DNA of 64,000 bases, from contig RDEW01000018.1 of assembly GCA_011109175.1 (NCBI GenBank), forward strand, positions 426,618 to 490,617. Reading direction: 5' to 3'. The DNA comes from Dicyema japonicum. Lineage: Eukaryota; Animalia; Dicyemida. The notes under the pieces were generated by a model. That model did no database searches and had not been told where the DNA came from. It worked only from the letters and a program-made list of their open reading frames with translations. Positions 20,541-52,733 of this stretch are shown piece after piece (the stretch's first letter is position 1; every line of letters starts with the position of its first letter). The position numbers and the translations under genes were made by a program.

Positions 20541-20606
20541 TATTTAAATTTAATATTTAATATATAATGAAATTCATTTTAATTTTAAAAATTCAAGTAA
20601 ACATTT

Positions 20607-22366: not shown

Positions 22367-24714
22367 ATGGAAATACCCTCATTATATGAGCATTGCCTTG
22401 TTCATATTCGAACAGACTGTGATGTAAAAAAATATCAAGAATTAAACGAAAAAACTAATATAATGATGTGTAAAAGAATATTTAAGGAAAGGATATATCC
22501 GACAGATCCAAATGAAATTGAAGTTCTATCAGATACACACAAAATTTCAGATGTAGTACAGAAAAATGTTTTTTTTGTTGAATTTACGGATGACATTGAC
22601 GTTATGGGTGTTGTAAAGATGATTCAAGTTTATCCGAATTTATCGAATATTAAATTATTCGAAATTACTTCATCACAAAAGAATCCTTTACTACCATTCT
22701 CACCCAATAATGTCCAATCATTCTCACTTCTGAGATATAATGACCCAGATTTGCTACATTCCCTATTTATGACTGGATTTAACAAAATAACTTCCCTTGA
22801 ACTTGGCTATATATATAATAGTGGAAAAATATTTAAAAACAGCACAATTAAAATAATGGATAAACTGGAAAACATATACTTTATGAACGTTCTAGTTAAA
22901 GACTTTGAAGAATTTGCTGCTAACTTAAACCGTCCAGAGTCTCTATGGTTTAATTTATATCAAATTCAGTTATTTTACGCACATAAATAATTTTTATGTT
23001 TGTGAAACAAATATGAACATTTTTAAAATCAATTGTATTCCTCTTCTGGAAAAAACCAAAAACCTTATTTATCTGAATTTATCGGGGTATATTGTAGATG
23101 TGGAGAGATTAACAAAGTTGTCGTTTCTAATGATCATAGTATAGTGGCCAAAATTGGATTGAAAAAAAATAATTTTGACCAACTTATAAGTTTCAGTGTG
23201 GATATAAATGAATTGGTATTTTTGATGATATAATATAGGATGATAAAGAATCATTTATAAACAACTTTGTCAGACTTCTCTTTGATATAGAAGCTGAACA
23301 AGAAGACTTTAATGTGATTTGCAATGGAAATAACAAATATCGAAATAAATTATTAAGTCAATTTTTGAAAGTATTTTTTAAAACATTAGTTCAGTTTTTG
23401 GATCAGACATATGATAAAAATAGTCAATTTGCAGAATATATCATGTAAGCGAATCGTATTATTCCAGACCAATTCTAAATACTATTACCAAAAACTATCA
23501 AATATCATACTTTAATCGCTGGTATGCGTTGATCCTATTTTTAGTATGATTTATGATGTTGTTCTTAAAATTGTTAAATATACCCAAATTGTTGGAATAG
23601 AATTTGTACTATAATTTTAAACTTTTAGAAAATTTCTGATATTTTAAAGTTATTACACTTTTTGAAACCATGGGAGACATCAATTGTCGTTTGCAAATTT
23701 TTCATTTTAGTTGCCCACGTTTTCATTCCTGATTAAAGTATTGTTCTTGTTGGGAAGACGACAATAGTGATGATAAAGATTGTTGTCAATCTATTATGAA
23801 AAGTATGAACATAGGACTTCTTAGCTATCTTGGCTATTCCGGACTCGTCAAAGTTTGAAATTAATAACAGGATAATTTTAGTACTGCTTCGAACGTCTTA
23901 AAGCATGCAACGACTTTGGTTATGCCATATTCAATGTGTTGAGATATCTTCTAGGTATTTGAAATATATTTATTTAGACGAAAATGAAAAAAATATGGAT
24001 TTGTTTCTTGAATTGGATGGAATTTCTAAAATTCACGATTATTTTAGAAGTTTTCTATTAAACAAGAATAAAAACTGTTATACTGCAATTCAAATCATTA
24101 CAGTCGTAGAAACTCTAGCTAAATTTCCAAAAGCAAGAGGTTTACTTGTTTCGTGTGGAATAATAGAAGATTTATTGTAAAGTCGGTGTTTCATTAAAAG
24201 GAATCCTTATTACGATCAACTTGATTTCAATGCGCACTATTTTATCTACAGTTGCATGTGTATGATATTGGGGGATCCAAATATTATTTTTCCAACATTT
24301 TTAAATTTGAATATCGGTGATTTGAGTCCAAAGGAATTCATTCTAAATAAAATTTGTCAATTTATAAAAGAAAATCCGTATGAAGCAGATTGCGATATCC
24401 ATAGTAGGTAATTTTATTTTCTATGTCGAAGGTCAATGATACCAACAATAAATTATTAAATGTGAACACGGATGAGCGACTTTTGCTTTGGGTTGTGTGG
24501 GAATTTGCTAATTTAACCACTAAATATTGTTAATTTTTATTTTTAAAATAGCAAATGTATTTATGGAGGTGTTGATTCCGCATAACATTATTGAGAAAAT
24601 TGAGAATATATGTTGTCAATCCAATATGGAAGAGATCCATTCCTACGCTGCGATTTTTAGAACAAACTACAATGTTGTTATTTTTGATTTTAGGATTACA
24701 TTCATCGTCACTAA
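22367..24714 (+). CDS. BC-box / LRR-like / ARM-like protein, ZYG11/ZER1-like, paralogue 1 (two apparent frameshifts)
   Basis: N-terminal SLYEHCLVHI fits the BC-box consensus. LRR-like NLIYLNLSG and C-terminal WVVWEFANL are present. Mini-introns are positionally shared with paralogues 2 and 3. Frameshifts at about 23740 and 24455. Confidence 0.7.
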
Positions 24715-25059
24715 TTAAGTATTCAAGTTAACTAATTTCTTTATTAATAAATTATTAACAATATGTATTCATTTCTTAGTCGCTATTACAGAGGCTTGCA
24801 ACTCATTATTTACTGCTAGACTGATTTTTTTCTTAAAAATCAAAATATATTTTTAACAATAATCATATTTTCTGTAAACATAATGACAGTAAAAATTCAT
24901 TTATAGCCATCAATGAATCATTATTTAACATGTAATAGGTCTTCCTGAATCGTTCATAGGTTTTTGGGCAATCACGTGGTATTTAGAATCGGAAATCTAT
25001 TATATAAATTAATTTTCTACTTTAAGTGATTAAAAAACTTGCAAATTGTGTACTCTTGA

Positions 25060-25640
25060 ACAAGGATGATATAATCGTCGTAGTCAAAGACCAGTGCATT
25101 CATACGCTGTTTACCGGATAAGCTTCATTGGACGATCTGAACTGTTGGCTCGTTACGAACATTCTACATACAAGTCACGAAAACCGAGTGGCTTTTCCAA
25201 AGGATATCCCTGGCAGTAGTCAGAGGTAACAGCCACTCGATCATATCCGCTGGACTCAGTAATTAACTAGTCACGAAAAGTGTTATACAACAATTTTCAC
25301 AAAACAGAAGATTGACAAACTCCGCTCAATGTGTAACCATAAATGGAAACTCAATCTCTACGACCAACTCAATCAAGATACTAGGCGTAGTTTACGACCC
25401 ACTCTTGACCTTCAGCAAACACATCGACAACGTCATCTCTTCGGCACAACTAAAGCTAAATTTTGTTAAAACACTCCTTGGACAATATAATTGGTGTTTC
25501 AACTCAAATTTAGACTCGCTCTACATGCAGTATATTCAACCGTCTCTAACTTACGGGTGTGCTGCATGGGGAACCAACCTATCAAACAGGAATGTAGAAA
25601 AAATCAATACCTTTTAAAAAATGGCCAGTAAGGCTTTGTA
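25060..25640 (+). mobile_element. I/Jockey-group LINE RT 3' fragment
   Basis: DDIIV...LDDLNCWL, KILGVVYDPLLTFSKHID and YIQPSLTYGCAAWG. Confidence 0.75.
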
Positions 25641-26179
25641 AAAGTTTTCTTGGACACCTCTAAACCCTACACATTTTGAGAAATTAGTGAGAAAAACCGG
25701 AGCCTTACTACTTTCCAAAAAAAGTTAGAAACTCCCGCCCAATCCGGAACCCGAAAGAACACCAAGCAATCATCTGACGGCTATGTAGTTATTTAATTTG
25801 TCGGTGATTTTTGGTTTTTAATAATAATAATAATTCTTTCAATAATTTTCCGCTTTATTGAAAAATAGGAGTGCAAACATTCTTGCTGCAGTTTATGAAT
25901 CCCTGAATTCCACTTTCTATGGATAGACTCGGAAATAGTTCGCATTTCAGACTTGCTATCTATACAAATAACTAGTCTGTGCTATTCAAAATTTTCGTCT
26001 TTGATGTATAATCGACCTTCAATGACAATAAATTTCTTGGAATTTTTTATTAATTTGGATTTTGCTTGTCTTGTAGATGTTTGTACAGGCTCACCATTTA
26101 GAATGCTCACTATAGTTTGATATTATATAATATTATTGACAGAGCTTATTATTATCATATAAATAGATAAACATTTTAT

Positions 26180-26445
26180 AGAGCACATGTCGCTAACAAA
26201 GCGATGGAAGATTACTTTGACAGTTGCGAAAAACCCTTCCGCGGACGACCTAGATCGACACTTCCGACAGCCTTAAACAAAGACTTAAATCGTGTGAGAA
26301 AAAATCTAAAGACGGGGGACGACCTGGACAAATTGAGATCACTCACATTCGACAGAGGAAGCTGGAAAAGACTAACTATAAATATTGTTTCTTTGAGTGT
26401 TGCACATGCTATAACATTATGGCTTTCGTCCCATAATAATGTTGA
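26180..26445 (+). mobile_element. RTE LINE extreme 3' end
   Basis: ANKAMEDYF...FRGRPRSTLP...LKTGDDLD, followed by the shared GCACATGCTATAA..TTATGGC terminal motif. Confidence 0.85.
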
Positions 26446-26879
26446 ATATGTTTGAATAATGGCAAAATATATTATGTATTTCCGACATGAGTAAAAATGA
26501 AAAGTGATAGACAGGTGACATGTAACCACCACGGAACGCTACAGATGTCACAGGCGCTACGCGTTACATAATGCTCAAATTTACAATTTCAAGCATTTTT
26601 TATTAAACTTTACACATGTTTTTCTCATTTATTATATTTAAATTAAAAAATTCTAATTTAAAAATTTTTGGAAGGCGCAACAGTTTTTAAATTTTAAATA
26701 GCATAATACAGGCGTGTTTTATAAACTTAAGCTGATGGGTCCATCCTTCTTTAAAACAACCAAAGAATAAATTAATATAATGAAAATAATGGAAGAGAAG
26801 GGGATCGTCGATCTAATGACAAGACAAAAAATACCGATTTACTCAAAAGTCAAAGAATTTTTTATCTATCAATCGGAGG

Positions 26880-28900
26880 TTATACCTTAAAGACACAAAT
26901 GGAAACCACAAAATTGTCATTTTCTCTAATAATTAGTGGCCTCGCAAATTCATCAACTGACCTATTGTGGACAAAACACATTGGAACAATAATGTCTATA
27001 TACCCCTCAAAAGTTGTACTTACTTCGTATATCCCCAACATATCCAGACAGTGATGACTAAAGGATCTGCTACTATGCAAAGACTTAAATGCCAAACATC
27101 CGCTCTGGCTCTGGACATATCAGTTGACTTTCGCGGAGATTACATCCTATCTATACCCGACGAACTAACTATTCTCAATTATCAGGATTCCCATACAATG
27201 ACCCCATTCCGAAGATAGGACAGTACAACTTCCCTGGACATATGATTATGCACCTCCTTCCTTGCTGGATATCTTTTTATAGAATTTTCGTTATGGTTTA
27301 ACATGTCGCTACCATAACCCAATTTTGTTGAAACTCAAAAGATCTATTTATCTGCTAAAATGTTCTACTGAGGTCATTTTCAATGCCGACAAGAAATACA
27401 TTCCAAGAGGACTCATTGCAGACTACAATTCAAATTTCACTAAGGAAATTATCGAAAAGATTCATACAAGACGTCGACTCAAAAAATCAAAAATTTATAC
27501 GGCCGAACTATCCAATCTTAATAGCGAAATTACAGAATTAATCAACAAGAGGAAATTGGACCGTTGGAACAATTTCATCACAAAAATTAACCACCGAACA
27601 AAACTAAAGGATTTTTGGAGTACTTTACGTGGAATTCAGTCGAAACAAAATAGAATGGAGACAACCCACGCCACCAGTATTGACAAGAATCAAACACCAC
27701 GTGATTTCACTTATTAGGCAGATGTCATAATGGACCACTACGCAAAAGTGAGTCACATTGATATGAACAAATGCTCTCGTCCATGCAAATTGAAAAACGT
27801 TCAAACTCCTCAAGAAAAACCGATTGAAATCAGTGCGTCAGATGTCGAAAAACTCATCAAAAACGCCAAAAACTCTTCTGCCAAAGGGCTTGATGGAATC
27901 TGCATTTAAAGCACCTGGGAACGAAAGGACTCAAAGCAATAACAGACTTAATTTCTGTGTCCATCAACACATGCAAAATTCCTGCACTATGGAAAAAATC
28001 CAAAATAATCCCAATCCTGAAGCTCAAGAAAGATCTTTCGGATCCGTGATCTTTCAGATCAATTTCACTACAATCTGTAGTATCGAAAATTGTTGAACGT
28101 GTTGTACTGAAACTAATATCGAAGTATTTTCCCATCCCTGATTTTCAACATGGCTTTCGTCCACAATACTCAACATTAACACATCTCTCTACCCTAACTC
28201 AATATATCGCTGATGGTTTTAACAATTATAATCCTCCCAGACGGACTATCCTCGCATCGATCGACCTAACCAAGGCGTTCGATCGAACATCAAGGCGCGT
28301 GCTAAGTAACAAAATTCTTGTATCTGGAATTCCTCTACGTCTACAGAATTGGTTAACAATTTTCCTCTCTGGAAGAATTGGTCGAGCTGAAATTATGTCA
28401 TGTCTATCTCATTACAGACTTCTTCCAAGACTTCGTTTTATCACCCACCTTATTCAACTTACACCTAAGCGACATTGTATGAGGATGACATGATTGTTGC
28501 CTCTAAAGACATAGACGTTAACGAAGCAACGAAAAATGTTCAGATCCACTTGAATACTCTTGAAGAGTGGCTTAAAGCAAACCACCTATCCCTCTCTCCA
28601 TCGAAATCCACCGTCACTGTATTCACGTCCAACCGCCGCCAACTAAATTTTCAACCAATTTTAACAATTCATGGACAACCACTCACCGTTACGAAACATC
28701 CCAAAATACTTGGAGTTATTTATGACCAACTACTAACTTTCTCTAAACATGTGGAGGAACAATGTACAAAGGCCTCTCACAAGATCAACATACTTAAAGC
28801 TGTGTCAGGTCATTCCTTTGGCCAAAGCAAAGAAGCCCTAACCATCATAAACAATTCATTCGAACAACTATTAACTATGCAAGCCCTTGCTGGTCAACCT
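26880..28900 (+). mobile_element. I/Jockey-group LINE (APE + RT), heavily disrupted
   Basis: APE motifs NVYIP and DLNAKHPLW. RT motifs FQHGFRP...GFN...PPRRT...DLTKAFD, YEDD and KILGVIYDQLLTF. Confidence 0.85.
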
Positions 28901-29520
28901 CTGCACCCTGATGGCTGCGCGGGTATCACCTTCGATTAACTTCGACCGAACAGTTTTCTTGAGATGGAGCACTTCGACTTCCTCTTTCTGACCACTTGTC
29001 TCCCTTGGACGGTTAGAAGCCATGGGACAACTTGCGTTGGTCCTCATTTGGTAGCGAGAGAATGCTTTCCGCGACCATCTCGATCAAGTCTCAGTGCGGA
29101 AGGCGCAAAACTGAATATGCGCATCCAATCATGTATTGCGTTGTCCGGAGGTCATCTTCGATCGTTTTGGAAATGGCCTCCGCAGCGACAGGTAGTACGG
29201 TCTTAGGAATCCTCATCGGGATAGTCAGTAAAGAACGTAATTCTGAGAAGAAGCGTAGGAACTTTTCATGGTCCGTGGTTGATGGGTAATTAACGGAAGA
29301 GATAACATTGGCGCTGGCACGGGGAACCTCCATGCATAAGACGAGGCATGACTGGCAGTGCCATACTTCAAGCACGCTCGCTGCGGCTTGGGATAGCTTG
29401 ATACACTCGAGGTGGAAAAAATCTTCACAAGCAGAGCAGGAGATCCCACGTTTCCGAGGTCTGACAAACCGACAGACGAACACATCTCAGTTTACATGGC
29501 TGGTACCTTTTTCCTCTAAG
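28900..29520 (-). mobile_element. CRE-type retrotransposon 5' fragment with PHD finger
   Basis: VC...ISCSACEDFFHLEC...WHCQSC (PHD-like), then IPMRIPK and IEGDTRAAIR, collinear with the N-terminus of the element at 33497. Confidence 0.75.
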
Positions 29521-29629
29521 TGGAAAAGTTATATTCAGGTGCCTTTTTTTCACAACAAACATAATCACAACAACACGTATTATCTGACCTTCCACAACAT
29601 TTTTTTAAATTAAAGTTTAATATAAACCG

Positions 29630-32076: not shown

Positions 32077-32589
32077 TTTAAATAGAGTTAATCATAATCA
32101 TAGAATTAAAATTTATTATTAATATTTTTCTTAATATACGTAAACATAGAGCTTGTTAGCTATGTTGATGGCCATATGTTTTTCCTAGATTATAGTATTC
32201 TTCATTCCAGTAAACGATGTAGTCTAGAGCGCGTGCTTTCAATAACCGAGGTAGCCCATTGTTACCGACAATCAGCTGTTGAGGAAGACATTATTGCTCG
32301 TAAAACCGGAAAATTCGTGTTGTTTTACTGAGGACAAATCCTAGAAGCATCCGCGTCGGAAATATGTCGGACAAGCTCGACGGCCGTTCGATTTGGGTTT
32401 TCTTTACTCATTTCAGCACAGAAATCCGAATAATCTGACGGATTTATATGGTTCTTATCAACATCAACCATTAACCGCAACGTGTTAATAATTATATATA
32501 TCTTTAATAGAATTATTTATTATTTATATTTTTTGATTTAAAATTATTTGAAAAATAATTAGTCATGTGAGATATACATAGAAAGCAAT

Positions 32590-33495
32590 TAAAACAACCT
32601 ATTCTAAAGGACCGGATAAAGATTGTAGGAAAAAAAGTCAAGTGAAAAAAGGTCAAATGGAAATAAAGTTTATAAATTAAGATTTTTATTCATGATGGTT
32701 TCATTTTAAAGTTAGCGAGTTTAGAATAACAAATTATTTAAATAGTTAATTTCGGCTAATGTTAATGCTTTAGTTTGTAATTGCATTAAAATGTCCCGCC
32801 ACATCTAAAACTACACGTGGTGGAAATAAATTCTAAAAATAAAACAAATTTTTTCTACTTTTAAAATTTTTTAAAAAATTTAAAATGTTATAAACATATG
32901 ATTTTTAATTAACGTGAATCAAGAGATTATTTAATGTGAATCAAAAGAATATTTAATATTCCATGCAATTGCTTTTAGGGCTTCTCCTACTGTTTTTTTC
33001 CGTCCTGGCGATCCAGACATATATTTAAAAGCCTTTTTTGTCTATCAATCGTTTTTTATCTGTTCTTGTTGAAATTCTTTTTCCAAAGGAATCCTGGCCA
33101 ACACTAGTTTTCGTCATTTTTTCTTCTATAAATTTGGAGGAAACAACGAACCAATGTATATTATTCTATTTTTTCTTCCATATTTTCAATGGGTAAACAC
33201 GCAAAGGCGTCTATCATTGCGCAAAAAATGTTAAAATTAATATTTTCTTTATATTGTTTTACTAGATGCAATTCTTGAATTTTTCTCCAGATTGACTGTC
33301 TTAGATAATAATAACATCCTCTAATATGTATTCGTCTCCCAAATACTGCAAGGACAGCTCGAAATACCGAATCTTCAAAGTCTGCCATAATAGTTTCAAG
33401 ACAAAATTCCAAATTCAAAATATGAATTGCATTTTGAATAGCCTCAAAAAAATATTTGTAAATCTTTCGTGATTTAGAAGGTAATATAATTGAAC
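32590..33495 (-). mobile_element. MULE/Mutator transposon remnant
   Basis: ILPSKSRKIYKYFFEAI...IMADFEDSVFRAV..VF....IRGCYYYLRQSIWRKIQE is the MULE transposase D-FE / GC.FH..Q region. GACTTTTTT/GACC-type terminal sequence near 32600-32660. Confidence 0.75.
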
Positions 33496-33496
33496 G

Positions 33497-36400
33497 TGGT
33501 GTTGTGGTGTATTGGCCGCCGTTCTACCGTTCTACTTTTTGGATTGAAGATGACAACGGAAAAGGATCCGAAACCAACACCGAAACCCAAAGAGCATATT
33601 TCTCGCACGTCTATCCCCATTTTCTGTGGACAGGCAAACAAGAGGAAATATAGTATCCAATGTTCCTGTTGCCCAAATTTTGGACACCTTGGGTGCAACA
33701 AGCTGACAAGACGGACTGCTCAGTGTCTCCCAAGTTGGTCATGCCCCACATGCCTTGGGAACCCCACAAGGCAAAAGGAACCGCTCTCTGGTTCAGTCCT
33801 GGATCTATCTAACACGGACGAATGTTTACGCCGACTGAACCGGCTTGTATCAGAGAGGGTTATTCCACTCAGAATCCCAAAATCGGTGCCTAGCAGCTGC
33901 CACGTGTCTCTCGAAACTAATCACCAAAGCAGTCAGTGACAACACCCAAGAAGCTTGGATTTCTCTGCTTTGCACCTCTTGTCTCGGATCACATCCGACC
34001 GAACTGAAAACGGAATGTCAAGTCAATCATCAAAAAGAACGTTTCTAAATACGAAAGTATCAACCTGGCGGATACACTGGAAAGCATTTCGACTGCTGTT
34101 GACTCACCCTCTTCATCCAGAACAAAGAAAAGGGATCTTCGCAGAGAAATAAACAAGAAGATCATGGTCGGGGACATTCGGGGAGCCCTACGTACACTCT
34201 CCAGCAGCGACAAGGTTCCTTCACCAAGCAAAGAAACCTTAGACCAGTTAGTCCAGAAACATCCGCCCGCACCAGCTGATCTACGTGACACGAAAATTCA
34301 AAAGGATGTCCCACAACTAAATGCCACCCCTGATGATATTAAATGAGCTATTCGTGCATTCCTTGAAAGCAGCGGCGCCGGTCTGGACGGCCTACGCCCA
34401 AGCCACATAAAAGACCTCACCTCTGTAACAACCGTCGACACAGGGGACTCCTTCATCGTCTCATTGAATGCTCTTACGAACCACGTTCTTCGGCAGATAT
34501 CTCGGAGTATGCTCGAGAACTCCTCTTCGCTTCGAGGTTGGTAGCCTTCAAGAAGCCTTGCGGCGGGATAAGATTCATCGCCATTGGTAACGTTCTTAGG
34601 CGCCTATCGTCGAAGATCGCTGCCAGAGCAGCTAGCAAGACTTTGAGTGCCAAACTTAGTCCTGTCCAATTCGGAGTTGGAGTACCTAATGGATGTGAAG
34701 CAGTAATACATTCAATCCGGAATTTTGTTGCCAGCCCTCCTGACGCGCAGGATTCAATTATAGTCAAACTGGACATACGTAATGCATTCAATAGCATCCG
34801 AAGGATAGAATCATAGAAGATAGTGTCTCTAGGATTCCTGAGATCAGCAGGATGGTCAGACTCTCATATGGTTCCCCGTGTACGCTGATCTTTGGACAGC
34901 ACGCCATCAACGCCAAGACTGGAGTCCAACAAGGAGACCCACTTGGCCCTCTACTCTTTGCTTTGGATATCGACTGTGTATCATCTGCGATCAAAACTCC
35001 CTTGAACTTATGGTACCTTGATGACGCGACCATTGGGGGAGTTGGAAAATTGTTGTGGAAGAGATTAAACGCGTCATCCCTGCCCTCGCGGCACTCGGAC
35101 TGGAGCCGAATCCATCGAAGTGCGAAGTTATTAACGTGACCTGTGGAGAGGACGCCTTTGAAATCGCAATAACGACCATTTCTACTTGCCTCCAGGACAT
35201 CAAAGTCACCCGACTAGAAAAGGCGATTTTCCTCGGATCTCCTCTGTATGACATGTCAACTGTCCTGGAGGAAAAGAGTGAATCCGTACAGCTGCTCACG
35301 CACAATCTAAAGGCTTTGGACTCCCACATTTCTCTCTTCATCCTCAAGAATTTTCACCTTACACCACTCCTTTTTTTCTACGAACATCCCCATGTTTCAC
35401 AGACATGGATTTATTGAGAGTTATCGACGAGAAGCTGAGGACCTCTGTTAAAGAAACACTTAACATCTCTCTGGATAAAGCAGGGTGGACCCAATGCAAG
35501 TTACTACTTCGTTATGGAGGAATTGGGATACGCTCGCCACTTGAACTCGCCCTCCCAGCCTTTCTGTCTTCGACATATGCTTCCCGTGGTCTAGTTCACC
35601 AGAGCTACATTAACGGATCGGACACTGAACCAATGGCATGCATGGCTCACGATGTTTGGATTGGACTTAATTTGGGACTCCCGAAAAACTTCAACTTCAA
35701 CAAACAACGAGACTGGAACGAACTTGTATGTTCGAGGACCATCGATGAGCTAAAACCACAACTCGACCGCATCGTCTTGCTTGTCTGGCTACCGCATCAA
35801 CAAACGTAAGTGGTGCATGGCTCAAAGCATTCCCGTGCATTTCACTCGGAACTTTTCTGGACGATGACTCCACGAGGATTGGGGTTTCCGTCCGCCTCGA
35901 AATCGATGTTTGCGCAATCTATCGCTGTAAATGTGGAGGAATAGTCGACGCGAAAGGACTCCACGCACTTTCCTGCCGAAGAGCGCTGGAAGGAGCCTGA
36001 GACATAGTGCAATCAACAAGGTTATTGCGTGGGGACTAGAAGCTGCCGAATTCCCTGTCCAGATGGAGTTCCTAGGACTTGCCACGGCAAACAGAAGGCC
36101 GGATGGAGCGACTCTGTTCCCGTGGATGCTGGGAAGTACCTGGCCTGGGATGCCACCTGCGTAGATAGCTTCTCCCCTTCCAATATTACAATGAGTGAGA
36201 AAATCCAGGCTCAGCTGCAGAGAAAGCAGAAATACTTAAAGCAAAGAAGTACACATGCCTCGGCGAGCAGTACACATTTGAACCTGTCGCAGTCGAAACT
36301 TCGGGAGTCATAGGAAGCAGGTCGTTAGCCCTGCTCAACAAAATTGGATCGTTAGTCGCTAAAAGGAGGAGGGATGTCAGAGAGAAGGGCTGGCTCATTA

Positions 36401-36510: not shown

Positions 36511-36529
36511 AAATATTCCATAAATAACT

Positions 36530-37345: not shown

Positions 37346-38778
37346 GTTTCACAGTTCTCATAAAAAATATATAAGAACCGTCTGATTTTACAAAATACAA
37401 TTTATATTTTTTTAAATATATTAAAATTATCGCCAATAAATGAAACAATTTCTGTATCATGTTATGGGTGAAGCATCATCTGCTCCGTAACGAAATGAAA
37501 GCACGCACTTTGTATAATCGTTTTTTGGGGTATATAATAGCGAGTGCAATATTTTGGCATATAAACTTACCGACAATGTAGAATGTCATTATTGCGACTT
37601 GCCAATTTGACGTAATTGACAGAAATCGAGAGTTTCGTTTTGGTGGTCTTATTCGAATAACAGGTTCTTCTTGTCCGTCGAATGTATAACAATTTTTTGT
37701 ATGGTCCGCTGCTCTCACGTTTGGAATGCCAACAGTGAATTCTTAAAACGATCGACTTTAATGTAAAATTGTAAGCCTATTATTATTTATACCTTCACTA
37801 GAATCATAATAATTATGCAGAAAAAGAAATTTTTTTAAATGTTAATTTCTTACAATCACTACGGCACACCACAGTAATTAGCTAGAATTCCAAATGAGTC
37901 GAGGTCATCGTCGGACTTCAGTTGTTTTTTTACACGTTTATGGTCTTTTGAAGCTTGGCAGTTTTACCTAAAACCTTTAATGGAAATGACTCATTAGAAA
38001 AACGTAGTATTCTTTTATCGCTCAGTTCCGTGAGGAAGTCTAATCATCACCAGGATGTTCCTTAATAGTCTCCAGCGAGACGCCATAAAGTTTGTATTAC
38101 AACATATTTCTTATAGATTTTCTTTCCAATCAAGGATTATCCGTAATTCTGCATTTTCAAGTGGACATCCAAGAAAGTAGACTTGCTCACCTGGGAAGAT
38201 AGATATGCCCGGCAATAGATTGTTAAAAATTCCTGCCTCTCAGAGGATTTCGTTTTTCAGGTTTAAAATATGATGAGCTCAATTTTTATGTTGACTTGAA
38301 GGTCAAGATCATACTAGGCAGGTAACAAGTATGATGGACTCTTATATAAATTTCTGTATGTCCTTTAAATTCTTATGTCATCAAGATACCAGAGGTTGAA
38401 ATCGAGTATCCATGAAACGATCCAAATGATCGATCGTCAATGAGAAGAAGAGTGTTGTAGAGTCAAAGGATATATACAAACGCTAGTGCCAATGAAGACT
38501 TTGGAAAGTATATAAGATGATGAGAGGCTTGGAGTATCGATGCCTAGTAAGATATAAAACGGCATAAAATGTCAACTTATGTTAGTCTCTGAATGTTAAT
38601 TGTGCATCGACGTGATGACATCTAACATGGTATTGAGGTTGGTTCCGAGAAGAAAGATCGAGTAAGATTAGAGCTATAAAAAATTTCTTTTACTTAAAAT
38701 TAAAAAAAATATATTTATTGTCTAAAGTCTAATTTTTTTTAAATTAACTTAATTATAAATTCAAAATTTTGTTAGAAA

Positions 38779-41163
38779 ATGGAAATACCCTCATTATATG
38801 CGCATTGCCTTGATCATATTCAAACAGACTTTGATGAGAAAAAATATCAAAAATTAAATGAAAAAACTAAGAAAATGATTTTTAAAAGTTTATTTAAGGG
38901 AATGCTATATCCAAAGGATCCATATCTATATGAAAAGATAAATTACACAAATTCAAAGTTACACAAGATTTCTGATTTTGTTCAGAAAAATGTTTTCTGT
39001 GTTGAACTTACTCCTGACATTGACGTTAATGATGTTGTAAAGATGATTCAAGTTTATCCGAATTTATCGAACATTAAATTATCCAACATAACTTCATCAG
39101 AAAAGAATCCTTTATTACCATTCTCACCCAATAACGTCAAATCATTTACACTTAAGCTATATAATGACCCAGATTTACTACATTCCCTATTTATGACTGG
39201 ATTTAACAAAATAACATCTCTTGAACTTGGCTATATGTGTTATGGTGAAAAAATTTTTAAAAATAGCACAATTAAAATAATGGATAAAGTGGAACACATC
39301 TACTTTATGAACATTGTAATTATAGATTTTGAAGAATTTGCTGCTAACTTAAACTGTCCAGAGGCGCTGTGGTTTAATTTATATAAAATTCAGTTATTTT
39401 ACGCAAATGAATAATCGTCATTTTAATGAAACAGATGATACTTTTAAAGTTAATTGTATTCCTCTTCTCGAAAAAACCAACAATCTTAAATTTCTCGACA
39501 TATCGGGATGTATTGTAGACATGGAGAAATTAACAAAGTTATCGATTATAATAATCATAGCTACTTGGGCAAAAAAGGATTTAAGAAAAATCATTTTGAC
39601 AAATTTATAAGTTTCAATGTGAATATATATGAATCGGTAATTTTGACGATATAATATAGAATGAAAAAGAATTACTTATAACTAGCTTAATCAGGTCTCT
39701 CTTCATGTTCAGAAATGAGGATGATTTGTATGAAATCTTAAATTGGATTTTCAGTTCGAATTACAAATTCCGATATAAATTATTAAGTCGGTTTTTGAAA
39801 GTATTTTGAAAACATTAGTTTAGTTTTTGTGTCTTAAATCTAATTTTGAGTATAGAGATCCATATGAATTCTTGTAAGTGAATTATTTTACTCCAGCTTT
39901 ATCTTAGCCAGGATTATTGAAAACTATCAAATATCGCATTTTAACCGTCGGTATGTGTTGATTTTATATTTAGTGTGATTTATTATGGCATTTGTAAATA
40001 TTTTGAGTATTACCGAAATATTCGTCACGAACTGGTAAATTAATTTAAAATTTAAGGATTTTTGTGATTGTTTAAAGTTATTTCACTTTTTAAAACCATG
40101 GGAATCATCAATTTTCGTTTGCAAACTTTTCATTTTAGTTGCCTTCGTTTTCATTCATCCTTAAAGGAATTTCTTGTTGGTATGAAGACTATAGTCACGA
40201 TTACGATACATATCGTTCTATTTTAAAAGATTTGAGCATAGAATATTTAACTTTTCTTGGATTTTCCGGACTTGTAAAAGTTTAAAATTAATGACAGGAT
40301 TATTTTAGTATTGCTTTGATTCTTGTGAAACATGCTACGTCATGGGTTTTTGCATATTTAATTTTTTGAGATATCTTCTAGGTATTTGAAATTATTTGTT
40401 TAGATGAAAATGACAAAAATGTGGATTTGTTTGTTGATTTGGATGGAGTTGCTCGAATTCACAATTTTTTAGAACGATTTTCATTAGAAGCGGATCGAAA
40501 CCTTAATATCATATTTATGAGTATAGAGATCATAATTCCAATTATTAAAGTTGTAGAAACTCTAGCTAAATTTCCAAACGTAAGAGGTTTACTTGTTTCG
40601 TGTGGAATAATAGAAGATTTATTGTAAAGTCGGTGTTTCATTAAAAGGAATCCTGATTACGATCAACTTGATTTTAATGCGCACTATTTTATCTGGAGTT
40701 GCATGTGTCTAATACTAGGAGATCCAAATATTATTTTTCCAACATTTTTAAAATTGAATATCGGTGATTTGAGTCCAAAAGATTCATTCTAAATAGGATT
40801 TGTCAATTTATTAAAGAAAATCCATATGAAGCAGACTGCGACATCCATAGTAGGTAGTTTAATTTTCTATGTCGTAGGTCTATGATACCAACAATAAAAT
40901 TATTAAATATGAATACAGACGAGCGAATTTGGCTTTGGGTTGTGTGGGAATTTGCTAATTTAACCACTAAATCTCGTTATTCTTTACTTTAATATTAGCA
41001 AATCTTTTCATGGACATGTTGATTCCCCATAATATAATTCAGAAAATTGAGAATATATGTAGTCAATCCAACATGGAAGAGATCCATTCCTACGCTGAGA
41101 TTTTTAAAACAAATTACAATGTTGTTATTTTAATTATTTTAGGATTATATTAATCATCATTAA
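38779..41163 (+). CDS. BC-box / LRR-like / ARM-like protein, ZYG11/ZER1-like, paralogue 2 (most intact)
   Basis: SLYAHCLDHI BC-box and NLKFLDISGC LRR-like repeat. IHSRSMIPTIKLL...WLWVVWEFANL...IIQKIENI resembles the ZER1 C-terminal INYRSFEPILRLL...WATWALYNL. Fourteen GT-AG introns of 22-29 nt give a continuous frame except one missing A at about 40783. Confidence 0.75.
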
Positions 41164-43065: not shown

Positions 43066-43150
43066 CAGGGTTTCCCAAAGTGGGCGATTTCGCACCCTTG
43101 GAATTCAAAGAGGGCGTTTATGAGTAATCGCCCCCTTTGAATTTTGACAC
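43066..43150. mobile_element. Solo hAT-type terminus
   Basis: CAGGGTTTCCCAAAGT resembles the Buster TIR at 8550. No partner end found. Confidence 0.35.
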
Positions 43151-43169
43151 AGAAATGAGGGTCCTTATT

Positions 43170-44640
43170 GCTAGAAGAAATAGACTAAAAAAACTATTGA
43201 TAAAACAGCATCTTTGAATACTGAAATTACAGATCTGAATAAGGAAATTACCAAAAAGATCAGAAATTAAAAAAAATTGGAAACTGCTTTGAAATTTTAT
43301 GTCAGTTTAAGTCACAAATCATATTTGAAGCTGGATCATCAACCGAATCACAAGAAGAAAAAATATCCATACATCGAATATTTCAAACCACTGGAAGTAT
43401 TTATGCAATTAAATACGTGAAAAATATAAAATTTAAAGGGGCGGATGACATTTCAATAACTGAATTGAAACACTTAGGTCAATAGCGAACGATGCTCACT
43501 GAAATTTTAATTACTCAATGAATAGAAATGAGATTCCTCATTATGGAAAAGATCACTTATACATCCAATACCTAAAAAGAACAAAACTTTAACGACCCGG
43601 AGTTATCGTCCAACATCGATTCTTTATGGCCTTTTAAGAACATTGGAAAAATTAATCCTCCACACGATAATCATTTGCTGATCTTGCAAGTTTACAGCAT
43701 GGCTTCAGATCGGGATACTCAACTTGAACACATCTAACAAAACTAATCAGTTCATCTCGGATGACTGAACTACTCGAAAATACATAAAAGAACGGTACTT
43801 GTCGCTCTGGATATCGAGAAGGTGTTTGATTCGGTACCGAGGAAGACTCTAACGACAAAAATTTTTGACACCGATATCATCAAAAAATCCAGACGTGGCT
43901 GGGCAATTTCATTAATGGTAGAAAAGACAAGTTGTCATGAATAATAGAAAATCAAGACAACGATACCTCCCCAACGGGGTCTCTCAAGAATCCCCTTTAT
44001 CACCAACCTTGTTCAATTTATTTACAAGAGACCTTCCAAATTCAAAATACCATCCTTCTGTCTTATGCCGACGATATCATTGTCGCAGAAAAACACCAAG
44101 ACCATAAAGAAGCTGCACGAAGGGTTCAGGAGACCCTCGACATTATGAACCCATGGTTCCTCAAAAACCACATGAAAATATCCCCTGGGAAGTCGAGCAC
44201 TGCGATTATCTCCTCCTACAGGAAACATACATCCTTCGATCCTAAATTAACTTGGAATGGAGAGCTTATCCCAGTTAATAAGAACCCATCAATCCTTGGA
44301 GTTACATATGACCCGTTGATGACGTTCACACATCATGTGGACACAATAATTTCAAAAGTTCAAAAAAAGATGGGGATCCTCAAAACCTTTGCTAGATCGC
44401 CAATATCTTCACTTTCTCATTTTAAATTATTATACAAACAGTATATTCTACCGACAATGGAACATAAATGATTACACTTTTGTCAATATCCACGCAGAAC
44501 AAATTAGAGGTCATACAAAACTAATGCCTCCGGGTCCTTCCTAAATGTGACAGAATGACACCTACGTCAGAAATAGGAACACATTAGATCTCAAAAAAGT
44601 TATGGAACATCTTGGTGACAAACAACAAAAATTCTTGAAA
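43170..44640 (+). mobile_element. I/Jockey-group LINE RT region, degenerate
   Basis: SYRPTSI..., LQHGFR, VALDIEKVFD, LSPTLFNL, YADD and ILGVTYDPLMTFTHHVD. Confidence 0.75.
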
Positions 44641-44849
44641 TTCTTGCGATATTTTGGTAACCCCTTGAAGATGAGTTTTTTGCCTATTAGAAGTATGCTC
44701 GCAAATTTGAGATCAAACCTTCCCCTTTTGGACGATCATGAAACATTGCAAACAGAGTCGAAATAAAGGAGGACGCACTGACATCGGGATCACTAATAAA
44801 GACGATAACTCTTTCCTCTTTCCTGTGTTCCCGGGGTTTAATAATAATT

Positions 44850-45600
44850 TTTTGGTGTGGTGGTGACGTGCCTCGTTTCTTTTCTGTACAACGGTTAAGA
44901 AAAATGTCTAAAAAGCAGAAGATACAAGAGAATATGCTTACCCAAAACTTCTTACGTTTAATTCTAGAGGAATATCTAAGCCTCATTCAAGAAATACTCT
45001 CTGTGATGACCTAGAAAAATATAACGTTTTTATTAGCTGTATACAAGAGACAAAAATTACGTACTATCTCGATGAAAACCATCAACACTATCGATTATTA
45101 GGCCTACCCAGTGACTCAAAACACTATGGTCTTGGATTCGCTATTCACAGAAAACAATCACCTGACATCAGTCCCATTTGGCGGGTGAATGACAGGATCT
45201 GCGTAATACAACAACCAGTGTTCCCTAAAATACACTAACAATTATAAATGTATATGCACCACACTGTGGGAGAGTGGCAAAAAAACTGGATGAATTCTAC
45301 TTAGCATTATCAAAGACGTATAATGAATATTAGTTGTCCTCACTTATATTCATTGCTGACGATCTAAATGCGAAAATTGGAACAAAAAAGAACTCAGAAG
45401 ATACCTTCATGTGAAGACACGGAAAAGAAAGTTGCCTAGGACCATACTTGGCCATTTCTGTACCGCAAACAAATTGTTCTTGTGCAACACCGCATTCTCT
45501 CATCGTGCATGCACATAACCACTTGGATGGGCGAACGAAAAATCCCAGATGGAAAACTAGCCCTATATATAACCAAATTGATTATATTATATAATCCTAA
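44850..45600 (+). mobile_element. RTE LINE 5' end (APE domain); the matching 3' end lies at 46330-46805 with nested fragments between
   Basis: 5' motif TTTTGGT..GGTGACGTGC as at 8001-8025, then TFNSRG...CIQETK...HYGLGFAIH. The 3' piece has RWRLFGH, FRGRPRTTLP and a (TAA)n tail. Confidence 0.7.
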
Positions 45601-45719
45601 CGGGTAGGGGGCAAATTCCACTAGAAATTCCAATAGTTTTTAAATATTCTTAATATTTTTTAATTAAATCTGTGAACTTTGGACGGAGGGGAGTGTTTTA
45701 ATTAATCTGGAAGCTTAAA

Positions 45720-46140
45720 CTTTGGATAACAAATTTCTTAAGTGGACGGAAGGGACGTGATGCCTCGGAGGACTGAAATCAGTCTCGCGTTTTCTCCCAA
45801 ACGGTGTCCCCCAGGGATCTCCTTTATCCCCCGCCTTAATTCAATTTATTCCTGGCCGACCTCCCGACACCGGAATCCAATAACGATGTACTACTCTCAT
45901 ATGCGGACGACATTGTTTTGGCCTCGCGTGATCGAAAAGACTACAAATTAACCTGAACCAACTCAACGCCTGGGTAATGAAGAACCCACTCTTGATAAAT
46001 TCCAGAAAGTCGGTCACGTCTATGTTTACTTCGGACAAAAGGTTGGGGAAGATGACTGTCAAGTTAAAATTGGACAAGTTGAAATCGCCTTCAGTAAATG
46101 TCAGAAGATCCTGGGCGTGACACTGGATACACACTTATGT
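45720..46140 (+). mobile_element. I/Jockey-group LINE RT fragment nested in the RTE
   Basis: GVPQG..LSP.L.NL.LADLP, YADDIV, PEKSVT and KILGVTLDTHL. Confidence 0.7.
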
Positions 46141-46328
46141 TTGTTACCACACCCCGGTATGCGGGAAGGTGGCCCTGCAAATACAGTCTGCCGCCCAGTA
46201 CGAGCTTGTAGGGTACGAGGGAGGAGCACCGGAAAAGAATAAGGATTTTGGCGGAACGCATCGGATCACGTGATAGTTAGTTTTGGTTTTACCGTGGTCT
46301 TGGGTGTTAAATAAATAAATTAATAAAA
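46140..46328 (+). repeat. Dispersed element of about 185 bp with (TAAA)n tail; second copy 58965-59155 on the - strand
   Basis: Two copies share GCGGGAAGGTGG...CAAATACAGTC.GCCGC.CAGTACGAGCTTGT...GAGGGAGGAGCACCGG...GGAACGCATCGGA...TTTTACCGTGGTCTT, then a TAAA tail. Confidence 0.8.
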
Positions 46329-46809
46329 CAGTGACGATTTATCAGACTGTGACATATTATATGCCGGATTAACGACAAAAGCTCTCTTATATACGAAGGT
46401 TCAACAACTGTCAGCGATCAATAGAAAACATAACTGGAATTTTATGGACATATAAGATCTCGCGAAATGTACTGACTGTACAATAAGTGTGACTGTACAT
46501 CTTAAGTCACGAGATCATTAGCTCTCGTTGGCGACTTTTTGGACACGTCATGAAGGTTGGACCCGATGTCCCCTTCGAATATCGCAATGGAAGATTACTA
46601 CTCTTCCAATGTAAAACGCTTTCGTGGAAGACCGAGAACAACCCTTCCGGTCGATTTACAAAACGATTTGAAAGCCGTGAAGAAACCATTGGCATCTGGT
46701 GACTCACTGAGGACAGAAGAGCTTGGAGCAAGCTAACAAACTCTCTTATATTTTTTGCTAGGCTATAAATATTATGGCTCCCGTGAAAGTGCTGATAATA
46801 ATAACACAG

Positions 46810-47130
46810 TCATCCATCCAAAGAAGACCCCGCCGACAATATCGACGTTGCCTCTCACGTTTGCAACAGACATCAAATGGAAAGCCACCGGGTCTCACGC
46901 GCGTCGTGGCTTTCTAGTGTAACTAGGTGTTTGAGTTTTTTAGGAAGCGAAGCGAATTTTCACTTATTCCTCCAGTTGTCTCGACCACAATCTGATTGAA
47001 CTCGAATCGGTCGCGTAGCGCTTCGTATTTCTTCTCTTTTGCCCTCATCGTTTTTTCTGCAGCATACAGTGTGTCTACCGCGCTCCCGACAACGTTGGAC
47101 AGACAAAATGGATGGACACAAGTAGCGTTC
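46810..47130 (-). mobile_element. CRE-type retrotransposon 3' fragment
   Basis: ATCVH...AKEKKYEALRDRFEF..IVVETTGG...RETRWL...VRGN. Confidence 0.7.
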
Positions 47131-48639
47131 AGACCAAAGGCTTTTAGTCTGCTAATAAACCAGTAATTTTAACAATTTCAGTCCAAACGAATGCTTGTGA
47201 CTAAATCAGTAATTACGCCTAGACCGGTACATTGAGATCTTGTCGAGTAAAGGCAATATTCCACACAAAACGAAAATTATTTTTGGGTAACTATTTTGAA
47301 ATTTGGTGTGGTAGAAAGTGCCATTAGAATATCTGCAAATGAAAGTTCTCGAATCCTGAATAGAATTTTTTTTAAATTGGAACCGTAGAACAAGGAAATA
47401 GGAAAAATTGAAGATGGTGATAATATTTTAATAAGCCACGACAGAGACGCAAACGTAGTTAATAGAAATACCCCTTATACGACAAATTTCAACGAAAAAA
47501 ATATACAGCATATGCCAGATACTAAATTAAACAATTTAAAATAACATTTTTTAATAAATTGTATTGCTTAATTTAGTTTGCTCAACCATTTTCGGGAATT
47601 TTTATATAAATGAAAAACGCGACATTCAATCAATGATTTTGATGTAATGTAGGCTTGCAGGAGGTCACGATCACTTAAATATTAGGGAGAAAATTAATAA
47701 TTTCAAATATTTAATGATAGATGAAGAAAAAACTTCAGAAATGTAATTTTTATAAAGGATTAATAATATTTTTAAAACCTCGCAGTTCTGGCGTCTCGCA
47801 GATATGGACTGACACTAAATTACTTATTTCAATCTTAAGTAACTTAAATCAAAATAAAAATGTCCCAAAAAAAACTAAAAGTACGTGGTCGAAAATTTTT
47901 TTAAGTGAGATAAAACAGTAATTCATTATAATTGTAATACTACTGAGGGTACAGTTTGGTTGCAATCGTTTACTTTAGGGGAAGTTTTGGTCGTAAACTG
48001 TGAACACACTTTGAAGGGTAAATGATATATCCATTTGGTCAGAGGTGGTTACTAAGCTATATTGTCTTTAAATAATGTAAATAAACTTAAATAATTTCTA
48101 TTCATTCCCAGGACCCTCAAACTTTTGAGTAATTTGCTAAACATAGTCGATGATCCATATCAAAATAATCCAAAGTATTTTGAGGGTTACTTGGATCTCC
48201 AAAATTATCATACAGATCAAACTAATTTTTACGGACATGGTATATACTTAAAAGAGAAAAACGGGTTTAAATTTTTGTGCAGATAGGGAGATACGGGAAC
48301 TATTGAAATTTTTTCGAAATTCACCTCTATATTTAAGCACTACACCGTCCATTAGAAAACATGTTTTCTAATTCAATGTTTTCATGTGTATGAATGTAAT
48401 CAAATATGAATGATGGTTTTTCCAGCGACTAAAATCTATCCTTCATATTACGAGGATTTCGAAGACGTCGGATATAGTAGACTGAAGTGAAAGATTCAAA
48501 AACTATAGAAAAACAAATAAGAAACAGCCTAACAGGATTCCGACGTACTAATAAAAAAATCTGCGAGTTTTAAATATTTGCGTTAATTCCGCTATTCAAC
48601 ATGTATTTAACAAAAATATACTTCCGTATATATGGAAAC

Positions 48640-48995
48640 ATTCTCAATGGAACATTTTGACATTTGGGGAACAGAAGAGCAGAGCGGATGTTTGGCATTT
48701 AAGTCTTTGCAGATCCTTTAGTCAACACTGTCTCGATATGTTGAGGATATACGAAGTAAGAACAACTTTTGAGGGTATATAGACATTACACAGTGTAAAA
48801 TATCTCTTCGGAGAAAAAAGATTCAAATGGGGTGATATCCGTAAATTTAAGTCCTTTCTTCAAAATAGTCGATAACCCTCCTCCGAGACTTCTAGTTCGG
48901 TCCTTGCAAAGTATACAATATCCAAGAAAACAAGGTTTTGGGTATTTTCTAGAGAGCTTCGATTCTTGAGTGATCGCAAAGTCCACTATCAATTG
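48640..48995 (-). mobile_element. I/Jockey-group LINE APE fragment, same family as 26880
   Basis: ITQESKL...KDRTRSLGGGL. It shares the nucleotide block GACTAAAGGATCTG...AAAGACTTAAATGCCAAACATCCGCTCTG with about 27056-27108. Confidence 0.75.
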
Positions 48996-49009
48996 GGATA
49001 AGAAGAGTG

Positions 49010-50260
49010 TAGTTTCAACACTTTATTGTCTCTGTAGGTCAAAAGATCTTCGAACAAGGCTCTTTGTAGGTCAAAGAGGTCCTGCGTATGTATCTGCGGT
49101 TATTGTACTTAGCAAAGCGTGAACTGGGTGATTCGGGTCGAACGACTGCCGTAGGAATTGTAAATTACGCATTTCTAGGTGGTCATAGAGCGGGAGGATT
49201 TTCGACTTTCAATGTAAATGGTCGGTGGGGGTTGACTTTAAACAGCCAGTTATTATTCTCAGCGCCGAGTTTTGCACTTTCTGCAGTTCTTGAGAAAGGG
49301 ACAAGGAGATTGAGGGGCGCCCAACTTGGTGAGCGTAGTTGAGTGTAGTCCTGATGAACTGTTTGTAGAGAGAGTTAAGTTTCTTTTTGCTGGACCGTTG
49401 AGTGGCCAGCTACTGCCCGTAATATGTTAAGTTCCGCTTGGCTTTTGTCATTACTTCCTCCACTTGTCGTTGAAACAGAGTGAAGGATCGAAGACAACTC
49501 CAAGGATCTTCGGTATTTATTTTAAGGGGAGTGGTTCGTCACCCAACGAGAGTGTGGGGTTTAGGTTGAATTTTCTTCGATCGTTGTGAACAGGGTAGCT
49601 GATGACTTCGAGGTGGAAACACTCATCCAGTTTAAGTTCATCCAGCGGATAGCAAGTTCAGGTGGTACTGCACTTTTTCGGTGGCCATCGAACATCGCCA
49701 CTCCTGGATGCGATTACTAGATCATCGGCATATGTCAATAGTTAACGTATTTTGGGTTGTTGGATGATTCTTTGACGTAAAGGTTGAAAAGTGAGGGTGA
49801 AAGGCACTGATCCCTGGGAACACGCGTTTGGTAGGAGTCGGTTATCTTGATAGATTTGAATATAGACACGTATGACCCAGTCTTCCCGAGAGGAAATTTG
49901 CGAGCCATGACTTCCATACAGAGGGAATATTTGAAAGAATAGATCTTGTGCAGAGGACCACACGGGAGATTCTGTCGAAAAGCTTTAGTTAGGTCAATAG
50001 AGCGCCAAGACAGTTCGTTCCGGGGTTTGCAAGTTGTTGAAACCGTTGAGATGTATTGGGGTTAGTGTCAGTAATGTGCGTGGTGGTCGAGTGTAAAAGG
50101 ACGGAAACCATGTTGTGAGTCGGAGAGGTTCGAGGTAGGGGGTGATTTCGTTAAGAATGATCCTTTCGAGATTTTTGAGACAACAGATGTTAAGGAAATT
50201 GGCCTGAACGAAGAGGGCAAGGAGGAGGCTTTGTTGTTCTTGAGTATTGGGGACGCAAAG
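49010..50260 (-). mobile_element. I/Jockey-group LINE RT, 5'-truncated
   Basis: SFRPISLTSVVSK, QHGFRP, GFNN..PERT...DLTKAFD, GVPRDQCLSPSLFNLY and YASPSWAPL. Confidence 0.8.
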
Positions 50261-50358
50261 CTAAAATTCCGTAATTGTTAATTAATATTTTTTATAAAAA
50301 ATCATAAAATATTTTTATTTAAAAATTATCTTAATTATAAATTCATTTTTGTTAGAAA

Positions 50359-52733
50359 ATGGAAATACTTTCATTATATGCGCGTTGCATCCAGAATATT
50401 AGAACAAACTTTTGTGAGAAGAAATATCAAGAATTATGCGAAAAATCTAAGAAAATAATTTCTAAAAAGATTATTTAAAGAAATGAGATATTCGAATGAT
50501 TTCCCTTTAAAAAGAGTATTAAAAGATTCAGATTCAAAAATATACAAGATTCCAGATGTAGTACAGAATAATATTTTTTGTGTTGAATTGACTAATCGCA
50601 AAAGTAGACGTTAGAGATGTTGTCAAGATGATTCAAGTTTATCCTAATTTATCAAATATTAAAATAAGTGTCCTATACTCATCAGAAGAGAATCCTATAC
50701 TACCGTTTTTACCTAATCACATCAAATCATTCACACTTTTAGACACTGATGACCCAGATTTGCTACATTCTCTTTTTATGACTGGATTTACCAAAATAAC
50801 ATTCCTTGAACTTTCTAGTGAATCTTCTTATAATCCTACAATTTTTAAAAATAGCACATTGAAAATAATGGAGAAACTGGAACACATAGAATTTTTTAAC
50901 GTTAAAATTATCGACTTTGAAGAATTTTCTGCAAACTTAAACTGTCCAGAGTCTTTATGGTTCATTTTAAAAAGTAAAATTCAGTTATTTTGCGTACATG
51001 ATTTATGGAGATTATAACAAGATATATTTGGATACAAGTATTATTAGCTCTTTTATCAAAAAAGCAAAGAATCTAACTTTTCTAAATTTATCGGGGTATT
51101 TCTTTGACGTTCATAAAGTTACAGAGTAATTGATTATAATAATCTTAGCCAAATGAAAATAAATGGATTGAATAAACTTCATTCTAAGTTGACCATCATT
51201 TTCACTAAAGATATAAACCAATCGGTACATTTGAGAATATAATATAGAATGATCGAGAATCGGCATTAAATAACTTAGTAAGGTTTGCCTATGAAGGACC
51301 TCCCGGACTATTGGATGAAACCCTGAATACGTTGAGCAATATTAAAATTCGAAATAACTTCATAAATCGATTTTTGAGAGTATTTTGAAAATATTATTAT
51401 AGCTTCTTTCTAAGAAATATAAGGTTGATGACTATAAGAATTCAGATAATATTATGTAACTTAATTGTATAAATACAGATCGATTCTTAATGACATCACC
51501 GACAAGCACCAGATTTCATATTTTAATCGTTGGTATGAGTTGATATTATTCTTAGTTTAATTTATGATATTTTTCTTCACGTGACTTTTGGTTACCATGC
51601 ATTTTCGTGAAGATTATGTACTATAATTTTAAACTATTAGTTTATCGATAATTGTCTAAAGTTATTAGAATTTTTAAGACCATGGGAGAGATATCAATTT
51701 TCGTTTGATAAATTATTTCAATTTAGTTTACCTGCGTTGTGTTTAACGTACAAAGGAATATTTTTATTGGGCTACCCCGAATATCAATATTTCCTTTATT
51801 GTCGCCCTATTATAAATTCTATGAGCAGAGAATTTCTATATTTTCTTGGTTCTTCAGGATTATCAAAGTTTAAAATTAATGACATGGTAATTTTAGAAGT
51901 GCGTTGAATGTCTTGAAACGTGTAATTACAGAGACTCTTACATATTAAATGTGTTGAAAGATTTTTTAGGTATTCAAAATATATTTAGTTAGACGAAAAT
52001 GAAAAAAATTTGGATTTATTTGTCGAACTAAATGGAATTTATCATATTCACAATATTTTTAAAAAACTTACATTTAAACGCCGAATTGAAGGAGATCAAA
52101 TCATAATTCCAACAATTTTTGCTTTGGAAACTTTAGCTAAATTTCCAAAAGCTAGAAAATTACTAGTATCGTATGGAATAATAGAAGATTTATTGTAAAA
52201 TTTATGTTTCATTAAAGGAATCTTCCTTACAACGAACTTAAATTTTTTGACCAATATTTTATCTGGAGTTTCATGTGTTTCATATTGGGGGATGCAAATG
52301 ATGTTTGTCTCACATTTGTAAGTTTGGATATCGGTAATTTGAATCCAAAAGAATTTATTCTAAATAAGATTTTTAAATTTATAAAAAAATTTCCATATGT
52401 AGCAAATTATGATAATATCTATAATAGGTATTTTAATATTCTATGTCGAAGGTCATTGATGCCAACAATAAATTTATTAAATTTTACACGGATGAGCGAA
52501 TTTGGCTATGGGCTGTCTGGGAATTTGCTAATTTAACAACTGAATATCGTAAATCTTTATTGTAATAATAGGAAATGAATTTATGGGCATGTTGGTTCCG
52601 CATAACATTATTCAAAAAATTGAGAATATATGTGCAATCCAATATGGAAGAGATCCATCACTATGCAGCAATTTTTATAACAAATTACAATGTTTTTATT
52701 TTATAATTTTAGAAATATATTAATCGTCACTAA
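50359..52733 (+). CDS. BC-box / LRR-like / ARM-like protein, ZYG11/ZER1-like, paralogue 3 (most divergent, several homopolymer frameshifts)
   Basis: SLYARCIQNI BC-box, MIQVYPNLSNIK, DPDLLHSLFMTGF, ETLAKFPKAR and WLWAVWEFANL, with the same intron positions as paralogues 1 and 2. Confidence 0.7.

Follow-up and report, generated by a model that had tools for sequence, protein, structure and literature searches.

Three decaying copies of a lineage-specific gene family of Dicyema japonicum, a candidate set of diverged ZYG11/ZER1-type Cullin-2 receptors

Most animals possess one or two zyg-11 genes. The related proteins ZYG11B and ZER1 are Gly/N-degron receptors of Cullin-2 RING ubiquitin ligases (CRL2). 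ZYG11B is composed of a VHL box, whose first helix contains the BC box, as well as ten leucine-rich repeats (LRRs) and nine armadillo (ARM) repeats, and its Gly/N-degron pocket involves residues W522, N523, D526, N567, E570 and A647 (PMC13201589). In Caenorhabditis, zyg-11-like genes have expanded to a lineage-specific, clustered or tandem and rapidly evolving set of 19–37 genes, which includes zeel-1 (PMC3144186). Here we describe three gene copies, designated A, B and C, in a stretch of 64,000 nucleotides (nt) of the dicyemid Dicyema japonicum (contig RDEW01000018.1, positions 426,618 to 490,617, forward strand), which was scanned as a whole and is referred to as the window. The copies are members of a large, lineage-specific and fast-evolving family, and the encoded protein is probably, although by no means certainly, a diverged Cullin-2 receptor of the ZYG11/ZER1 type. 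Neither a link between Dicyema and ZYG11/ZER1 nor a dicyemid case of such an expansion was found in the literature searched. The first-pass annotation of the window had nevertheless gone too far in proposing an undescribed system, because lineage-specific expansion of ZYG11-like genes is already known from Caenorhabditis; besides, the copies in the window are broken.

Alignment of the three stretches and a repeat search confirmed that the copies lie on the same strand at the coordinates proposed earlier (Table 1), about 16 kb and 12 kb apart, with start-to-start distances of 16,412 and 11,580 nt. Gene models were built as the longest open reading path over candidate GT..AG introns and were then projected via the three-copy alignment. 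All three copies consist of 15 exons separated by GT..AG introns of 20–29 nt at homologous positions; where about 14 common intron positions had been claimed, exactly 14 were recovered in every copy. Introns 39372–39393 and 40624–40647 of copy B may serve as examples. Supplemented with a placeholder base in exon 12, copy B comprises 686 codons and a stop codon (2061 nt). DNA identity of the gene units is 82% (A–B), 74% (A–C) and 73% (B–C), and the frame-projected proteins share 65%, 51% and 52% of their residues, respectively. The second half of exon 1 and exons 12–15 are the best-kept parts of the protein, and exons 2–10 vary. Similarity between the copies extends from about 45 nt upstream of the ATG to about 30 nt downstream of the stop codon; the repeat search revealed no duplication of inter-copy DNA outside the gene units, and an exon-by-exon tblastn search did not detect a fourth copy within the window. 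The window is AT-rich (GC content 28–48%), and its genes are interrupted by introns of about 23 nt. Micro-introns, a GC content of about 36%, an abundance of long interspersed nuclear elements and DNA runs dating from 2019 fit D. japonicum as the probable source (PMC6736024; PMC13644364).

Upstream of the gene, A and B have the same 36-mer, AACTTAATTATAAATTCAAAATTTTGTTAGAAAATG, for which zero matches would be expected by chance, and in copy C this motif is slightly altered. It may serve as core promoter or as a 5' element resembling a splice acceptor. The suggestion that the copies also have a 3' motif in common holds for A and C only, which share TAATTAAGT.TTCAAGTTAACTAAT.

Many more paralogues exist in the reads. 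A total of 325 distinct contigs from one read run aligned to 2.55 kb of copy B, 178 of them being less than 99% alike, and where exon 1 is most conserved, the summed depth reached about 24-fold the depth of a copy-specific contig, a figure which does not translate into copy number. The family is thus indeed expanded, as had been presumed. A single contig of 167 nt from a 2015 run deposited under another organism label is identical to positions 40918–41084 of copy B including intron 13, at a depth of 2; it may represent parasite DNA in another sample.

The proteins begin with a segment resembling the box by which Cullin-2 receptors dock to Elongin C. At residues 5–14, copies A, B and C encode SLY(E/A/A)(H/H/R)C(L/L/I)xxI, consistent with the BC-box consensus (S,T,P)LxxxCxxx-phi (PMC4878042). 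The S-L-x3-C-x3-I start noted in the first-pass annotation was recovered in three of three copies, and the BC-box claim derived from it is supported by the model, in which the predicted helix 4–16, the first N-terminal helix (low predicted local distance difference test score, pLDDT), contains the consensus. In a six-frame translation of the window, motifs of this class occur at a background of 1.1e-4 per residue. Residues 46–197 of copy B were modelled as leucine-rich repeats. The structural neighbours of exon 1 are generic LRR proteins, among which PRAME and F-box/LRR (FBXL) proteins fit best by shape and features; a Pfam match of exon 1 to the F-box was not obtained at E values up to 10. 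A language-model search of the ESM Atlas with exon 1 retrieved a cluster of PF25013 (LRR_Zer-1) at rank 3, with a score of 0.92 and 166 shared features. This cluster is the top named match of exon 1, followed by the LRRs of FBXL and PRAME receptors.

Database searches were run per exon or exon profile rather than per spliced protein. Scanning about 20 exon pieces against Pfam yielded just two matches, namely LRR_4 in exon 2 and PF22964 (ZER1-like_2nd) in exon 13. The latter, found with exon 13 of copy B (E = 0.0055, 15.8 bits, family cut-off 27), covers positions 282–312 of the 356 positions of the model, and its placement is collinear: 44 model positions remain, as compared to 47 residues of the protein following the match. 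The corresponding piece of copy C matched PF22964 with an E value of 0.13. Exon 11, the sole C-terminal exon that was folded, was predicted to form three helices (pLDDT 66), in line with the proposed helical C-terminus; a Foldseek search with this model returned no match. Matches of exons 1, 11, 12, 13 and 14 to PDB entries, comprising a hydroxynitrile lyase, helix-turn-helix regulators, p19, RanBP2 and a designed coiled coil, were at chance level and were discarded.

Because two weak pointers, obtained by different methods, concern opposite ends of the protein, and because a BC box is present and box, LRRs and helical region follow each other in this order, ZYG11/ZER1 ancestry appears to be the best reading, which we infer with moderate confidence from sequence and do not regard as demonstrated. 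The protein of about 686 residues would then act as substrate receptor of a Cullin-2 ubiquitin ligase, being highly diverged from the known members. Its N-terminal BC-box helix would dock Elongin C, an LRR solenoid would follow, and a C-terminal helical (armadillo-like) domain would hold the substrate. Binding to Elongin C and Cul2 as well as the function as substrate receptor are predictions drawn from these similarities.

The capacity of the three copies to encode such a protein is impaired. With the shared introns, the conserved frame is complete in none of the assembled copies, which had been missed before. Copy B lacks one nucleotide after position 40781 in exon 12. Copy A has an additional nucleotide in exon 9 (about 23738–23745) and lacks one after 24449 in exon 13. 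In copy C, at least six frame changes, two of them in exon 1 and the others in exons 7/8, exons 9/10, exon 13 and exon 14, identify it on sequence grounds as a pseudogene. Errors of assembly or consensus might account for these breaks, in which case A and B would be intact, functional genes, an explanation which we regard as doubtful but worth serious consideration. The breaks in B (GA versus GAA) and in exon 13 of A (AAA versus AAAA) are located in short homopolymers, and for the published D. japonicum assembly, which was made from pooled animals, PacBio RS II data were combined with Illumina data (PMC6736024). Among the DNA read contigs covering copy B, those with an extra A behind 40781, four to five per run, make up roughly two thirds of the total depth at this site, whereas about one third lacks it. 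Since no copy-specific contig bridges this site, the break in B may be an assembly slip, an allele or real. Downstream of the lesions in A and B, protein identity still amounts to 82–93%; the breaks in these two copies are therefore recent, allelic or errors. On the other hand, the insertion in exon 9 of A lies outside a homopolymer, copy C would require at least six corrections (the read check covered copy B), and the neighbouring Tam41/Mmp37 gene (19522–20543, minus strand), whose three exons are collinear on Pfam positions 3–121, 121–176 and 182–322, has a clean frame free of such errors, so that most of the lesions in the copies are probably real. This gene, which codes for a mitochondrial phosphatidate cytidylyltransferase, is intact and contains two micro-introns.

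Rescue of the frame breaks by splicing was considered and rejected: alternative paths get past some of the breaks, but at the price of losing conserved coding sequence or keeping conserved introns, and were judged to be due to chance. In copy A (23689–23738), retention of intron 8 together with removal of a 20-nt GT..AG segment at 23719–23738 would restore the frame of exon 9; this is probably a coincidence, although it could also reflect intron sliding.

Several observations speak against assignment to the ZYG11/ZER1 type. As assembled, all three copies are broken, so that possibly none of them makes the protein. The PF22964 match is 31 residues long and stays below the family cut-off, and in the PDB the same exon of 32 residues matches RanBP2 in its Ran-binding domain with E = 0.01; as this match is of similar strength, the Pfam match of exon 13 on its own is shaky. 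The resemblance of the C-terminal block to ZER1, as pointed out in the first-pass annotation, is thus borne out in part, by a sub-threshold match that competes with RanBP2. None of the other exons matched PF22964 or PF25013 in the Pfam scan, and ZYG11B or ZER1 chains were not found with any exon in phmmer and hmmsearch searches of the PDB at E values up to 10, which have low power for short exons. The exon 1 profile had no match among 1.84 billion cluster representatives, and the Atlas search with exon 12 came back blank. Both structure models are of low confidence (pLDDT 52, and 66 for exon 11). When the part downstream of the BC box was scanned with a regular expression for a strict Cul2 box (phi-P-x-x-phi-x-x-x-phi), only copy C was positive (IPDVVQNNI); in A (ISDVVQKNV) and B (ISDFVQKNV) the consensus is absent, serine replacing proline. 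Membership in the ZYG11/ZER1 family is consequently a claim with weak backing, favoured by the PF22964 match and the LRR_Zer-1 cluster and disfavoured by the searches of PDB chains and by the Pfam LRR_Zer-1 model.

These negative results, together with the generic nature of the structural LRR matches, would suit an orphan family of LRR and helical-repeat proteins that is unrelated to ZYG11/ZER1 and does not serve as cullin adaptor, its BC-box-like string and tryptophan-rich C-terminal motif being due to chance or convergence. We consider this unlikely, as the two weak and independent matches, one towards each end of the protein, both point to domains of the ZER1 family, the Pfam match is collinear near the C-terminus, and the BC-box consensus coincides exactly with the N-terminal helix in all copies. 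The order of box, LRRs and helical repeats and a length of about 686 amino acids (aa) likewise fit ZYG11B with its 744 aa (PMC13201589).

The ratio of nonsynonymous to synonymous substitution rates (dN/dS) between the copies is 0.56–0.65, and the proportion of nonsynonymous differences (pN) is significantly lower than that of synonymous ones (pS) in all three pairs; dN in exons 2–10 is about twice that of the protein ends. Since dN/dS is significantly below 1, past selection on the copies is best described from these alignments as relaxed purifying and not diversifying, in disagreement with the earlier view of a diversifying set. The micro-introns differ between the copies by Jukes-Cantor distances of 0.16, 0.26 and 0.25, as compared to 0.34, 0.49 and 0.58 for synonymous sites, which suggests either strong constraint on the 23-nt introns or a bias in dS at such base composition. 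Although every copy is frame-broken, the unit ends are sharp and debris of long interspersed nuclear elements (LINEs) and hAT elements surrounds the copies, it is very improbable that these are long-dead repeats which were copied as DNA, possibly with mobile elements, and merely inherited their gene structure, given the deficit of pN relative to pS, the intact GT..AG boundaries at 14 of 14 introns in every copy, the high protein identity past the lesions in A and B, the presence of the base missing in B in most read contigs, and the lack of terminal repeats or a transposase in the unit.

For the preferred reading, a receptor family under relaxed purifying selection, we envisage a birth-and-death process in which the coding signature would have been kept through most of the divergence, the copies now dying. 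Copy C would be a clear pseudogene, copy A would follow with two breaks, and copy B with one, at a site whose intact form is also present among the reads. Originally the three genes may have formed an array of adjacent members, which insertions of LINE and hAT elements later separated.

Like ZYG11B and ZER1, the putative Dicyema receptors would combine a BC box in the first helix with an LRR solenoid and a C-terminal helical domain, and they show weak matches to ZER1-like_2nd, in the C-terminal part, and to LRR_Zer-1; unlike them, their exons are too diverged to find the human proteins, A and B have no clear Cul2 box, and the family is multi-copy as opposed to one to three genes. With the Caenorhabditis expansion they would share the lineage-specific, fast-evolving character of ZYG-11-like receptors with clustered or tandem members, but they belong to another phylum, and the copies are decaying. 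In contrast to zeel-1-type genes, neither a transmembrane fusion nor a toxin partner was seen, the flanks having only LINE debris in common. PRAME and FBXL proteins are similar in that a short N-terminal adaptor-binding box precedes the receptor LRRs. They differ from the Dicyema proteins, for which no F-box or PRAME match was found in Pfam and whose predicted C-terminal helical domain is foreign to both groups.

Table 1. Features of the three gene copies and their surroundings (window coordinates)
Feature	Position	Strand	Remarks
Copy A	22367-24714	+	15 exons, 14 micro-introns; +1 in exon 9, -1 in exon 13
Copy B	38779-41163	+	15 exons, 14 micro-introns; one frame break, exon 12
Copy C	50359-52733	+	Pseudogene as judged by sequence; at least 6 frame changes
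Upstream motif, copy A	22334-22369	+	Ends in TTTTGTTAG AAA ATG
Upstream motif, copy B	38746-38781	+	Ends in TTTTGTTAG AAA ATG
Upstream motif, copy C	before 50359	+	Variant
BC-box consensus, copy A	22379-22408	+	SLYEHCLVHI
BC-box consensus, copy B	38791-38820	+	SLYAHCLDHI
BC-box consensus, copy C	50371-50400	+	SLYARCIQNI
Exon 1 of B	38779-39371	+	197 aa; predicted LRRs at residues 46-197, running on into exon 2
Exon 2 of B	39394-39537	+	Predicted LRR continuation; Pfam LRR_4, E 0.041
Variable middle of B, exons 2-10	39394-40381	+	12-65% protein identity per exon
Conserved C-terminal region of B, exons 11-15	40404-41163	+	
Exon 13 of B	40879-40974	+	SMIPTIKLLNMNTDERIWLWVVWEFANLTTKS; sole stretch matching Pfam ZER1-like_2nd
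LINE reverse-transcriptase fragments	20979-21821, 25312-25617, 28475-28939, 44145-44471		
PHD-finger open reading frame	29094-29483	-	
PHD-finger open reading frame	33490-33936	+	
hAT dimerisation remnant	10457-10858		

As to the surroundings of the copies, a co-duplicated partner gene within the window was considered and dismissed, protein-level similarity between the flanks being confined to debris of LINE reverse transcriptases. Carriage of the gene unit by a mobile element was likewise rejected, as neither a transposase nor convincing terminal repeats bound the unit. An open reading frame with a rhodanese domain (Pfam E = 1.3e-09) is located downstream of copy C at 54868–55452, and a short tandem array with units of about 110 nt occupies positions 12360–12806 within a stretch rich in open reading frames. 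Scans of the window for tRNA genes and for Rfam families were both empty.

It is tempting to speculate that dozens of BC-box receptors turn over as an adaptive recognition system in an animal with about 5,000 predicted genes; as it stands, we regard this as improbable. Such a system might be directed at host factors, at mobile elements or, as with zeel-1, at selfish toxin-antidote partners, and specificity would be set by the variable middle, comprising the end of the LRRs and the first helical repeats, and not by the canonical C-terminal degron pocket. The yield from the window itself, three decaying copies, is modest. If the assignment to ZYG11/ZER1-type receptors holds, however, one class of substrate receptors of ubiquitin ligases has become far more numerous in a very gene-poor animal, in parallel to what nematodes show for their expanded zyg-11, F-box and BTB families, and the Dicyema family would provide a second, independent case for studying why receptor families expand and decay.

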